DNA of 64,000 nucleotides. It comes from Vitrella brassicaformis CCMP3155. Its lineage: Eukaryota > Protista > Chromerida. The notes under the pieces are model-generated. The model was not told where the DNA came from and searched no databases. It was given only the letters and a program-made list of their open reading frames with translations. A program made the translations under genes and the position numbers. Where the stretch lies: contig CDMY01000613.1 in NCBI GenBank assembly GCA_001179505.1, forward strand, positions 124,001 through 188,000, given 5' to 3'. This document shows positions 44,690 through 50,205 of this stretch, piece after piece (position 1 is the stretch's first letter; every line of letters starts with the position of its first letter).

Positions 44690-47293
44690 TCACTTGGGCA
44701 GCTCGCCGCAGTCCTGGATGAGCACCGGTGCGGCGAGGCTGGCCATACGCCACAAAGACGGCCCATCTGTCATGTCATCCAGGGTGGCCCGCCCATCGCC
44801 GCTGCCCCTGCCCTTGGTCTTCCTGCTGGCCACCGTGAGGGAGAGCCCGTGCAGGTAGCTGACGGTCGGGAGGTCGTCGATGATGCCGACGACCGTGTCC
44901 CACACACTGCACCGATTGGTCGACGACACTGTAATCGAGAAGCGGCTGCCTGCACTCACTCACGCACACATAAATAACGAGCATAAAGAGAGAGTTTGAG
45001 CATGTCAGCTGCGCCCGCGCCGAGAGGCGTAGCCTACCGTGCAGTTTGTGTTTCGGGTTGCCCTTCTTGTCGGTCGATTTCTCGCCCAGACACGCCACCA
45101 TGCCCGGCCGCCGGGGTGCGATGAGGGACGTGTGGTGGTCCCATCTCGTGTGGTGCATGCCATAGATGCTCTCGGTGTAGACTTTGTGGCTGCTGTCCAG
45201 AAAGCCCCCAATCAGCTCGGCGCCTTCAAAGGCAGAGGGAATATTCGTGCCTGAACACAAAGCGGGCAGGATGGCATGGCAAGAAGCGCATGTTGACTCC
45301 CATGTGTCCATCCATGCCTGCAGCCGTGTCTGTGGCGCCTGTGGCTGACCGACTGACCTTTGTAGTGCAGCGGGTATCCTGAGGTGCCGTTGCCCTTCTC
45401 GCCCGTGCAGAAGCACCTGACACATGAACGAATCAAGCCAGCAATCGTTGTTGGCTGCATTTGGCTCACTCGTCGATTTCACCTGAAGTTCTCGGCCGCC
45501 TTGGGGTTGACGTCGGTGAAGAGGGTGATGACGATGCGCTTCGACCTGCTGCTTGTGTGAACCTTGAGGTCGAAGAACACCTTCGGCCGCTGACACAACC
45601 AACAGGATGAACGAAACACTTGGGAAGACGGTTCCCCTCCCTCCCTCCCTCCCTCCGTGTGTGCATGTGTCGGGCTGTGCAGTTCTCTTGCCTTTGGTGT
45701 CGGGCTGTTGGCGACCTTTCGCGCGCACAGGAAGCCCTCCGTCATGTGTTCGATGAGCTTGGCGCACTCTGCCTTCACCTGATCAGACAGACATGCGCAC
45801 ACGCTGGCTGCCGATGGGCGTCACTCTTTGTCCGGGTCACCAATTGGTCCGGGCTCGGTTTGACTTTGAAGCAAATGGTCCTCCAGAGGTCAGTGGTCTC
45901 CTGACAACACAGACACAGGCAGAGATGAAAGGCCACTTGTTGGTTGATATGGATGCATTTTCGCAGGCGATGGATGCATTCTTGCCCGTGTACCTTGAGC
46001 AGCTTGGCCCAGTTAGTGTAGTCGACGTGCAGGGTCAAATACGAGTCGAGCTCGCGCAGCAGGTCCAGCAGATCGTCAGTGGCCTGGAGTGACACAACAG
46101 ACAGCGTGAGAGGGCATCCATCCCGAAGCCCACGCCCACATTGATGGCGAGTGCGCTCTTGATGGATCTCTCGAAGTCCCTCAGCCGCTTGACAGTCTCG
46201 GTGAGGTCGTTGGCCTGCCGCCTCTCTTCAGCCAGCCTATCGAGCACCGCCTCCTCCTTCTCCCTGGCAGTCTCTGGGTCGTCGACAGACGGCAGCCGCG
46301 CAGCAGCTGACGGGACAGAAGCCAACAGATGCCCTTGTTCTGTGCATGTGTGTGTGTATGGTGTAGGCACCCGGTGGACGGCCGGTGAGGGTGTTGAGGA
46401 GCTGGTCGATGGGCTTGGGCTCGGCCGTCTTGAAGCTGTCGACGATCCGAATGAACTCAGCCACGATGTCCCTCTGCAGTCGGCCCAGCTGCTGCTTCAC
46501 CAGCACACCCTTGTCGATGGCCTTGCCCCTGCTCTGCACAGCACATGTGACCAATCAGCAATGCCCTTGCCGTGCTCCTCTACTTGATGCATGGCTGACC
46601 TTGAGTTTGGCCATGTCCTGGTCGGCCTTCGCGTCAAGGGCTGTCGCGAGGACGGATTGCCGTGCCCACAGAGCCTGCCGCACCCACTCGCCAACCCACC
46701 TCTCGTCCACCGAGGGTACCAGGTGGCCGCCCGTCGCGTGGCGCACAAACCGGGACCACCGGGTGCGCTCGAGTGGCGAAGCGGCGAGACTCGAAAAGTC
46801 CAGAAGGTGGTCTCGCAGCATGGCCAGCGGCATCCCGCTGAATCTCTTGGTCGCAGAGGTCTCCAGAGCCGAGATGAGCACACAAAAGGCCGTGGGAATG
46901 ACGAGGACGCCTTCATCGAGCAGGTAGAGGTGCGGGCTCCCAGGGGCGGTGTATCCGAAGGTGACGAACCGCACAGTGGAGATGCCCTCCCGCTGCAGAT
47001 CACGGATGGCGGCACTGGCGGCAGAGAAGCTGCGCGTCACATCCTCGGTGGACGGGCAGGGCGACATAGCCAAGGGCAGGAACCGAAGGGCCGAACACTC
47101 CGAAGCGCCAGATTCACCACCAAACGTCGCATCGACCGCACAGACAACAGCGCCACAACCGAGGAACAATGGGTCCAGGTAGAGATGCAGATCCACTTCG
47201 CCTGGCTGAGGTCCACCGACCTCGCCAGTCGTAGCCACAGCAGATGCAGATGCCTCTTTGGTGGCCGCCATGCCAGCGAGGCACTTCTCGATG
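44690..47293 (-). CDS. Multi-domain protein ending in a degenerate cyclophilin-like domain, left copy (5' end lost in gap)
   Basis: KVFFDLKV...[40 protein letters not shown] and the terminal VLIQDCGELP match the cyclophilin fold; the N-terminal ~350 aa are unrecognised. Confidence 0.8.
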
Positions 47294-49490
47294 NNNNNNN
47301 NNNNNNNNNNNNNNNNNNNNNNNNNNNNNNNNNNNNNNNNNNNNNNNNNNNNNNNNNNNNNNNNNNNNNNNNNNNNNNNNNNNNNNNNNNNNNNNNNNNN
47401 NNNNNNNNNNNNNNNNNNNNNNNNNNNNNNNNNNNNNNNNNNNNNNNNNNNNNNNNNNNNNNNNNNNNNNNNNNNNNNNNNNNNNNNNNNNNNNNNNNNN
47501 NNNNNNNNNNNNNNNNNNNNNNNNNNNNNNNNNNNNNNNNNNNNNNNNNNNNNNNNNNNNNNNNNNNNNNNNNNNNNNNNNNNNNNNNNNNNNGTAGACG
47601 TGTGGCTACGACTGGCGAGGTCGGTGGACCTCAGCCAGGCGAGATGGATCTGCATCTCTACCTGGACCCATTGTTCCTCGGTTTTGGCGCTGATGTCTGT
47701 GTGGTCGATGCGACGTTTGGTGGTGAATCTGGCGCTTCGGAGTGTTCGGCCCTTCGGTTCCTGCCCTTGGCTATGTCGCCCTGCCCGTCCACCGAGGATG
47801 TGACGCGCAGCTTCTCTGCCGCCAGTGCCGCCATCCGTGATCTGCAGCGGGAGGGCATCTCCACTGTGCGGTTCGTCACATTCGGATACATAACCGGCTC
47901 TGGGAGCCCGCACCTCTACCTGCTCGATGAAGGCGTCCTCGTCATTCCCACGGTTTTTTGTGCGCTCATCTCGGCTCTGGAAACCGCTATGACCAAGACA
48001 TTCAGCGGGATGCCGCTGGCCGTGCTGCGAGACCACCTTCTGGACTTTTCGAGTCTCGCCGCTTCGCCACTCGAGCGCACCCGGTGGTCCCGGTTTGTGC
48101 GCCACGCGACGGGCAGCCACCTGGTACCCTCGGTGGACGAGAAATGGGTTGGCGAGTGGGTGCGGCAGGCTCTGTGGGCACGGCAATCCGTCCTCGCGAC
48201 AGCCCTTGACGCGAAGGCCGACCAGGACATGGCCAAACTCAAGGTCAGCCATGCATCGAGTAGAGGAGCACGGCAAGGGCATTGCTGATGGGTCACATGT
48301 GTTGTGCAGAGCAGGGGCAAGGCCATCGACAAGGGTGTGCTGGTGAAGCAGCAGCTGGGCCGACTGGAGAGGGACGCCGTGGCTGAGTTCATGCGGGTGG
48401 TCGACAGCTTCAAGACGGCCGAGCCCAAGCCCATCGACCAGCTTCTCAACACCCTCACCGGCCGTCCATTGGGTGCCTACACCATACACACACACATGCA
48501 CACAACAAGGGCATCTGTTGGCTTCTGTCCCGTCAGCTGATGCGCGTCTGCCGTCTGTCGACGACCCAGAGACTGCCAGGGAGAAGGAGGAGGCGGTGCT
48601 CGATAGGCTGGCTGAAGAGAGGCGGCAGGCCAACGACCTCACCGAGACTGTCAAGCGGCTGAGGGACTTCGAGAGATCCATCAAGAACGCACTCGCCATC
48701 AATGTGGGCTGCATAACTATGCCGGCAGACTGGCGGGGCGATTGATGTCTGGTATGTGTGTGTGTTTGTGGTGTGCGGCTTTGCAGGACACTGCCAATCT
48801 CTTGGCCACGGTGTATCAGCTCGACATGCACTTGACGATGCACGTCGACTACACCCATTGGGCCAAGCTGCTCAAGGTCAGCCTGCAAACCTGCACGCAC
48901 ACAAGTGGCCTTTGATCTCTGTCTGCGTGTGTCGTGTGGCGTCAGGAGACCACTGACCTCTGGAGGACCATTTGCTTCAAAGTTAAGCCGAGCCCGGACA
49001 AACAGGTGAGCCGAATGGGAGAGTGACGCCCATCGGCAGCCAGCGTGTGCGCATGTCTGTTCGATCAGGTGAAGGCAGAGTGCGCCAAATTTTTATCAAA
49101 CATGACGGAGGGCTTCCTGTGCGCGCAAAAGGTCGCCAACAGCCCCAAACCAAAGGCAAGAGAACTGCACAGCCCGACACATACACACACGGAGGGAGGG
49201 AGGGAGGGAGGGAGGGGAACCGTCTTCCCATTTGTCTCGTTCATCCTGTTGGTTGTGTCAGCGGCCGAAGGTGTTCTTTGACCTTAAGGTTCACACAAGC
49301 AGCAGGTCGAAGCGCATCGTCATCGATCTCTTCCCCGACGTCAACCCCAAGGCGGCCGAGAACTTCAGGTGAAATCAACGAGTGAGCCAAATGCAGCCAA
49401 CAACGATTGCTGGCTTGATTCGTTCATGTGTCAGGTGCTTCTGCACGGGCGAGAAGGGCAACGGCACCTCAGGATACCCGCTCCGCTACA
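45362..49490. repeat. Near-perfect inverted repeat: arms ~45362-47293 and ~47594-49490 around the gap
   Basis: The arms are reverse complements, including introns (e.g. GTGGCTACGACTGGCGAGGTCGGTGGACCTCAGCCAGGCGA on both sides of the gap). One locally diverged patch lies at ~45990-46145 vs ~48715-48890. Confidence 0.9.
47294..47593. other. Assembly gap (300 N) at the centre of the inverted repeat
   Basis: Run of 300 N. Confidence 1.
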
Positions 49491-50205
49491 GAGGTACACC
49501 ACACCACACCACACTACACCACACACCAGAGGGGAGACGGTGTGTGCAGGCAGCCATGGACGCTTTAAAAATTCCTTTTGTCTGATTGATGCCATCCGTC
49601 CATGCAGGCAGCGCCATACCTTACGCCGTCAAAGGCTGCGACTTGATCGGCGGCTACCTGCCCGACGGCGACAGCTTGACATCGATGACCGAGAGCACCT
49701 ACGGCGCCAACCACAGCAAGTGGGACCACAATCGCTCCCTCATCGCCGCCAGACGGGCGGGCATGGTGCTGCTCATGGACGAAGCCGCCAGCCAGAAAAG
49801 AGGCATCCAGAACTACAGAGAGCACGGTATGGTCCGTCGGGTCGGCGGGCGGCCGCATCATATCCACGTGTTTCAGCCAGCGACTTGCAATCGATGAGTT
49901 GTGTGTGTGGTTTCCTTCCTGTCTGTCTGCTTGTCTGTCAACAAACAGGCGGCCGTTTCATGATAACGGTGGCGTCGGCCAACTCAGCGCAGCATTGTGA
50001 GACTGCGGTTGGGTTCATCCCCGACCTGAAGGACGTCAGCTTCCTGCAGGCCGTCTCGCTCATGACCGACTTCCGACAACCTCAGCCCGCACCCACGCAG
50101 TTCACCCTCGGCGACCTGGCGTATGGGCCGCAGATTGAGCTGCAGCCTCTCATCGTGCCGGTCATCATCCAGGACTGCGGGCAGCTTCCTGATCAGGACG
50201 ACTGA
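47594..50205 (+). CDS. Multi-domain protein ending in a degenerate cyclophilin-like domain, right copy (5' end lost in gap)
   Basis: Same exon structure as the left copy; KVFFDLKV...[14 protein letters not shown]...YRG and terminal VIIQDCGQLPDQDD*. Confidence 0.8.

Follow-up and report, generated by a model that had tools for sequence, protein, structure and literature searches.

A mosaic pair of paralogous genes in Vitrella brassicaformis with the features of ectopic gene conversion between linked copies

The analysed window was a stretch of 64,000 nucleotides (nt) of Vitrella brassicaformis CCMP3155, and coordinates given without a contig name are positions within it. At 44690-50205 the window carried two paralogous genes, here called L and R, which encode proteins with a cyclophilin-like domain and were separated by an assembly gap (Table 1). 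As scaffolded, L (minus strand) and R (plus strand) faced away from the gap at 47294-47593, as an earlier note on this locus had described. Each gene was resolved into 10 exons with GT-AG introns from the border coordinates, and a check of frame and splice sites showed that the frame was open throughout. The exon borders were those of the public models P0013 (located with tblastn, for L) and P0009 (for R), save for the 3′ end of exon 6 (49131-49155; 45692-45716), where the public models differ. The R model uses a GT donor after 49131, and the L model and most paralogues are eight codons longer at this end, which implies a downstream, possibly GC, donor. L and R were joined by inverted repeats far above chance, of 817 nt with 96%, 290 nt with 98%, 313 nt with 94% and 193 nt with 93% complementarity.

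Genome searches with exon 1, exon 9, exon 10 and whole proteins showed that the family to which both genes belong has exactly seven members. Besides L and R, these are P3 on the same scaffold, 52-55 kb upstream of the pair and on the minus strand like L; P4 and P5, a direct-oriented tandem on another scaffold (C1045) with copies 5 kb apart; P6 on C706; and P7 on C616. Single exons or database-annotated proteins served as queries in all searches, and exons were concatenated only for the frame check and for the pooled ratio of non-synonymous to synonymous divergence (dN/dS). Intron 7 was present in L, R, P3, P4 and P5 (66-84 nt) and missing from P6 and P7, in which exon 7 runs directly into exon 8; the family that shows this presence/absence difference is species-specific.

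The sliding-window identity profile and the block divergences both showed that the likeness between L and R is a mosaic. Nucleotide divergence was 3.3% in 47603-48709, 31% in 48710-48934, 11.8% in 48935-49130, 3.8% in 49131-49480 and 42% in 49481-50205. The inner ~1.9 kb of each gene had been reported as nearly identical, introns included; this was true of tract A, but the likeness was not uniform, as 48935-49130 was only 88% identical. Intron identity was 94% within the tracts vs 55% outside, and the outer introns 8 and 9, also said to have diverged, were only 50-60% identical. At the protein level the counts made by hand in the earlier note were closely reproduced. Exon 1 had 199 of 215 residues identical, compared with ~15 substitutions counted in ~213 amino acids of the first visible exon, and identity dropped abruptly at the exon 8 donor (49493/45358), which is the intron after YPL(H/R)Y(K/R)G where the break had been placed. 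Exon 9, the next one, had 31 of 70 residues identical (44%, the figure given before). The diverged internal exon within conserved flanks was recovered as exon 4 (18 of 30 residues identical), although the diverged island was found to take in introns 3 and 4 as well. Synonymous divergence (dS) between L and R was far from uniform along the gene, rising from 0.035 in exons 1-3 to 0.45 in exon 4, falling to 0.17 in exons 5-8 and reaching 0.87 in exons 9-10. The heterogeneity across blocks was strong (chi-square p 2e-25), and the values for exons 1-3 and exons 5-8 also differed from each other (p 6e-4).

Table 1. Positions of the two genes, the gap between them and the segments of the mosaic
Feature	Position in window	Strand	Content
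Gene L	44690..47293	-	public model P0013, 625 amino acids, 5′-truncated by gap
Gene L exons 1-5 (gene direction)	47292-46600, 46533-46371, 46306-46140, 46083-45994, 45900-45841	-	open frame
Gene L exons 6-10 (gene direction)	45778-45716 (or 8 codons longer), 45589-45483, 45416-45358, 45250-45038, 44949-44693; stop 44692-44690	-	
Assembly gap	47294..47593	.	300 N, placeholder; must hold the 5′ ends of both genes and the intergenic region
Gene R	47594..50205	+	public model P0009, 594 amino acids, 5′-truncated by gap
Gene R exons 1-5	47596-48243, 48310-48472, 48537-48703, 48787-48876, 48946-49005	+	open frame
Gene R exons 6-10	49069-49131, 49262-49368, 49435-49493, 49608-49826, 49949-50202; stop 50203-50205	+	
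Tract A	R 47601..48709; L 46134-47239	+ (R)	exons 1-3, introns 1-2; L and R sisters, P3 next
Island, putatively unconverted	R 48710..48934; L 45912-46133	+ (R)	intron 3, exon 4, most of intron 4
Tract B	R 48935..49495; L 45356-45911	+ (R)	exons 5-8, introns 5-7
Tail, putatively unconverted	R 49496..50205; L 44690-45355	+ (R)	introns 8-9, exons 9-10; C-terminal two thirds of the cyclophilin-like domain

Phylogenies of the segments conflicted with each other. In tract A, L and R were sisters with support of 100/99 and P3 was next (100/100), and in tract B the three sequences L, R and P3 formed one group (100/99). The island tree instead grouped L with P3 (100/98) and R with P4 (93/96), and the same two pairs were found in the tail tree, both with 100/100, where L and R stood in opposite halves and were among the most distant pairs. 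Within the island, L differed from P3 by 11% and R from P4 by 16%. Approximately unbiased (AU) tests rejected a grouping of R with P4 in tract A (p 3e-49) and a grouping of L with R in the island (p 8e-8) and in the tail (p 9e-5). Clustering of sites gave a similar result, as the quartet-informative sites fell into 31 runs vs 90.5 +/- 6.3 expected (permutation, p<1e-4). The longest difference-free runs were also significant in GENECONV-type permutation tests for L-R, L-P3 and R-P4 (p<1e-4). The clustering of L-like vs R-like P3 states within tract A was marginal by hand count and was not used.

Overall, tracts of identity that run through silent sites and introns and have diverged bounds, conflicting segment phylogenies and clustered sites were all found together, and gene conversion behind the mosaic, which the earlier note had proposed, is well supported. 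The note had also argued that a single recent duplication does not fit, and the dS heterogeneity and the strongly supported tree conflict bear this out. Most probably, the mosaic arose by ectopic gene conversion among linked members of the family, with R being a P4-type gene that was overwritten in its 5′ part by L/P3-type sequence. L and R would then come from different branches of the family, L from the P3-type and R from the P4-type, and non-reciprocal ectopic recombination would have replaced the 5′ 1.9 kb of R, introns included. R would have kept its own sequence in the 225 nt of the island around exon 4 and in all that lies 3′ of exon 8. The exchange presumably took place in double-strand-break repair, with a neighbouring copy as template. 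We infer the direction of transfer, from an L-type donor to R as acceptor, from the tails. Each tail was single-copy in the genome, and the closest sequence to the R tail was P4 (66% in exon 9), at a dS of 0.43; since no copy is closer than P4, the lineage of the R tail would be far older than the similarity between L and R, which points to R as the acceptor. Because of the island and the unequal ages of the blocks, at least two tracts are needed, and three or four tracts of different ages would be more likely.

A simpler history would be a single rearrangement, in which the 5′ part of L was recently copied by a partial inverted duplication and joined to a P4-type tail of greater age, with no repeated conversion. 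The inner blocks are indeed L-like and the tail is P4-like, and the break after exon 8 coincides with an intron, so that a fused gene would keep its frame. However, P4-type sequence at 48710-48934 lies inside L-type sequence, the ages of the blocks differ (3.3%, 11.8% and 3.8% divergence; dS 0.035 vs 0.17) and the site patterns are mixed in 48940-49330. A single fusion is therefore considered highly improbable.

Tracts of the same kind were found elsewhere in the family. L and P3 showed 97-99% identity over 48202-48737 vs ~80% in the neighbouring parts. P4 and P5 showed 94% identity over 536 nt (C1045:21442-21977 / 26764-27296) and over 332 nt (22332-22663 / 27666-27997), with the median at 63%. 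For copies on different scaffolds, no 150-nt window exceeded 91%. Because tracts are present both between L/R and P3 and in the direct P4-P5 tandem, and identity between scaffolds stays lower, conversion appears to track linkage in either orientation, and the inverted geometry of L and R is not required for it. Homogenisation is thus probably family-wide and dependent on linkage, with the L/R-P3 and P4-P5 tracts as products of the same process.

These findings bear on the explanation offered by the earlier note, that L and R arose by one old inverted duplication and form a true palindrome, in which pairing of the arms by fold-back homogenises the inner part and the outer domain escapes. The genes are head to head as scaffolded and identity is highest beside the centre. 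Palindromes are well known for conversion between their arms (PMC8600007, PMC8327919, PMC8981503), and in Vitrella genes that lie close together head to head are over-represented (PMC4501334). Against this, L and R fall into different branches of the family in both tail and island, where each has a nearer paralogue elsewhere, so that an old duplication with an escaped outer domain is not supported as it was put. A gradient of identity decaying from the centre outward was looked for in the block divergences and was not seen, as divergence rose to 31% in the island and then fell to 4% again. Exchange was also not confined to inverted arms, since equally clear tracts joined the direct-oriented copies 5 kb apart (P4 and P5) and 52 kb apart (P3), so that a fold-back within a palindrome is not needed. 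The arms did not reach >99% identity throughout, with L and R 96.7% identical at best and some blocks at 58-69%. Finally, the centre is an unsequenced gap, and because of this a true palindrome rests on the scaffold join. The points on linkage and identity profile weaken the fold-back reading, which may yet apply to the L-R tracts themselves. The old palindrome with fold-back homogenisation finds only partial support and is regarded as unlikely.

A more elaborate form of the palindrome was also considered. In this form, a true short palindrome would have a shared bidirectional promoter and a centre so perfectly homogenised that it cannot be assembled, central breaks would drive conversion, and selection would preserve the differences in exon 4 and in the C-terminal two thirds of the cyclophilin-like domain, giving the genes distinct binding specificities with all the rest in common. 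It is given only a slim chance. The dN/dS analysis gave no evidence of selection protecting the island or the tail. Across the family dN/dS was 0.5-0.6, and the family is under weak constraint. In exons 1-3 (47596-48703 vs 46140-47292) it was ~1.2, not different from 1, with 28.5 non-synonymous vs 8.5 synonymous differences.

The apparent tract edges lay within ~25 nt of exon-intron junctions, namely the exon 3 donor, the exon 5 acceptor and the end of exon 8. It is possible that repair synthesis annealed back in conserved exon sequence, so that visible differences begin where the diverged introns start; this reading of the edges is our own suggestion.

The gap between L and R was examined together with the possibility that the pair is an artefact of assembly. 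The sequences flanking the gap were not continuous and shared no common frame, and proved to be first exons on opposite strands, each cut by the gap. Compared with the five complete paralogues, the missing 5′ coding sequence amounted to ~92 codons (~276 nt) in L and ~108 codons (~324 nt) in R and included the start codon and the MYND finger. The missing parts were not found on any other contig of the assembly. As both must fit inside the gap, its real length must be more than ~600 nt plus the intergenic region, and thus >300 nt. The window has three gaps in total, each of exactly 300 N (the other two at 18130-18429 and 27258-27557), and the assembly paper reported 931,689 N and 4,177 contigs on 1,064 scaffolds, which gives a mean of 299.3 N for each of 3,113 gaps; for both reasons 300 N is taken as a fixed placeholder length. 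The head-to-head join of L and R comes solely from scaffolding. At the start of the right contig, nine bases (47594-47602) matched none of L, P3 and P4 at the homologous position, which could reflect either a faulty contig end or true divergence of a low-complexity linker.

An artefact could have arisen by wrong head-to-head scaffolding, or by contigs made chimeric through paralogue switching at identical stretches longer than the k-mer. The placeholder gap lies at the centre, both contigs end within ~50 nt of the same homologous position, the assembly was made from short reads with k=75, and identical stretches of L and R longer than 75 nt exist, e.g. 47703-47879. However, exons 1, 9 and 10 each occurred exactly seven times in the genome, so that only swaps among existing copies are possible, and swapping the tails of L and R leaves the mosaic in place. 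In addition, island and tail were of matching type within a copy (P3-like in L, P4-like in R), the inner arm of R had its own differences from L and P3, and the assembly had been checked with REAPR and mate pairs. An assembly artefact as the source of the pair is thus rather improbable. The mosaic is robust to such an artefact, and the head-to-head geometry is to be read as scaffolded.

Several points weigh against conversion from an L-type donor into R. The data come from a single short-read assembly of a single strain (velvet k=75, with iterative correction from the reads), and cross-mapping of reads between copies that are 97% identical could have inflated identity slightly. The direction and the number of events were drawn from only four to seven sequences, which are themselves reticulate, and P4 and P5 shift position between the segment trees. 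All copies compared were from that strain, with neither an outgroup species nor a second strain among them. The segments and clades were picked after viewing the identity profile, which makes the p-values post hoc, though they are extreme.

In comparison with known systems, the locus adds a new case of a known process and carries the ordinary sign of conversion between linked copies. Like interlocus gene conversion in other small linked families, it shows sharp-edged tracts of near identity that include introns and silent sites, tree conflict and a signal that depends on linkage. It differs from these in that the family is lineage-specific and of unassigned role, in that the partners come from two deep branches, by which the acceptor would become a visible chimera, and in that the L-R case is known from one strain. 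With the palindromes of sex chromosomes it shares inverted copies around a centre that are homogenised by non-reciprocal exchange. The arms of those palindromes are >10 kb and >99% identical (PMC8600007, PMC8327919, PMC8981503), whereas the L-R arms are at most 1.9 kb and 88-97% identical, are broken by the putatively unconverted island and have an unsequenced centre, and in the Vitrella family direct-oriented paralogues appear to convert too. With its four copies, the locus may serve as a clean case of ectopic gene conversion leading to concerted evolution in a chromerid, the chromerids being free-living relatives of the parasitic apicomplexans. Since L and R each have a nearer relative at another place in the genome, sequence of the donor type can be distinguished here from that of the acceptor type. 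In practical terms, paralogue trees and duplication dates of Vitrella gene families would be wrong unless built segment by segment, and both public protein models at the locus lack their 5′ parts.

The proteins of the family, with full-length relatives of 594-741 amino acids, begin with a MYND zinc finger and also carry a cyclophilin-like domain; the uncharacterised region between the two contains a helical stretch. A Pfam search with a complete member, P0001, gave hits to Pro_isomerase (PF00160, 24.4 bits with a cut-off of 21.7) and zf-MYND (PF01753, 22.8 bits with a cut-off of 22.7), both barely above threshold. PF00160 was also precomputed for P0009 and P0013. The MYND finger was seen in the complete paralogues by Pfam and by alignment, and the matching region of L and R falls in the gap. 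Searches against the PDB matched cyclophilins with E 4.9e-19 for L and E 1.3e-17 for R. Arg55 and Gln63 of human cyclophilin A are catalytic active-site residues required for isomerase activity. In the alignment to chain 4jcp_A the position of the catalytic Arg was Tyr in R and Ser in L, and that of the Gln was Ile in both, so the domain of L and R lacks the catalytic Arg and Gln. Cyclophilin-like domains free of isomerase residues, e.g. in chains named 'probable inactive PPIL6', are alike in this replacement; the Vitrella domain differs in being preceded, within one protein, by a MYND finger at the N-terminus and the uncharacterised middle region, an architecture found only in Vitrella.

An exhaustive HMMER search of 1.84 billion representatives yielded only one full-length representative, and the rest matched the MYND finger only; no family relatives were found in a metagenome scan. 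Judged by these searches, the seven-member family appears to be found only in Vitrella. For the middle region, the ESM Atlas offered no clue, and AlphaFold with a seven-row alignment produced a poor model with a predicted local distance difference test (pLDDT) score of 47.8. The only fold match for the middle region was a generic helical bundle at residues 412-508, which was rejected as it lies below the meaningful level for helical repeats.

Finally, an exon of a gene from a second MYND family, one with a Cdc37-like motif at the N-terminus, was located at 51948-52331 on the minus strand, tail to tail with R. It had 61% identity to a gene that stands head to head with P3 (C613:116852-117379), and a further copy of this Cdc37-like MYND gene stands head to head with P5 (C1045:22795-23265).

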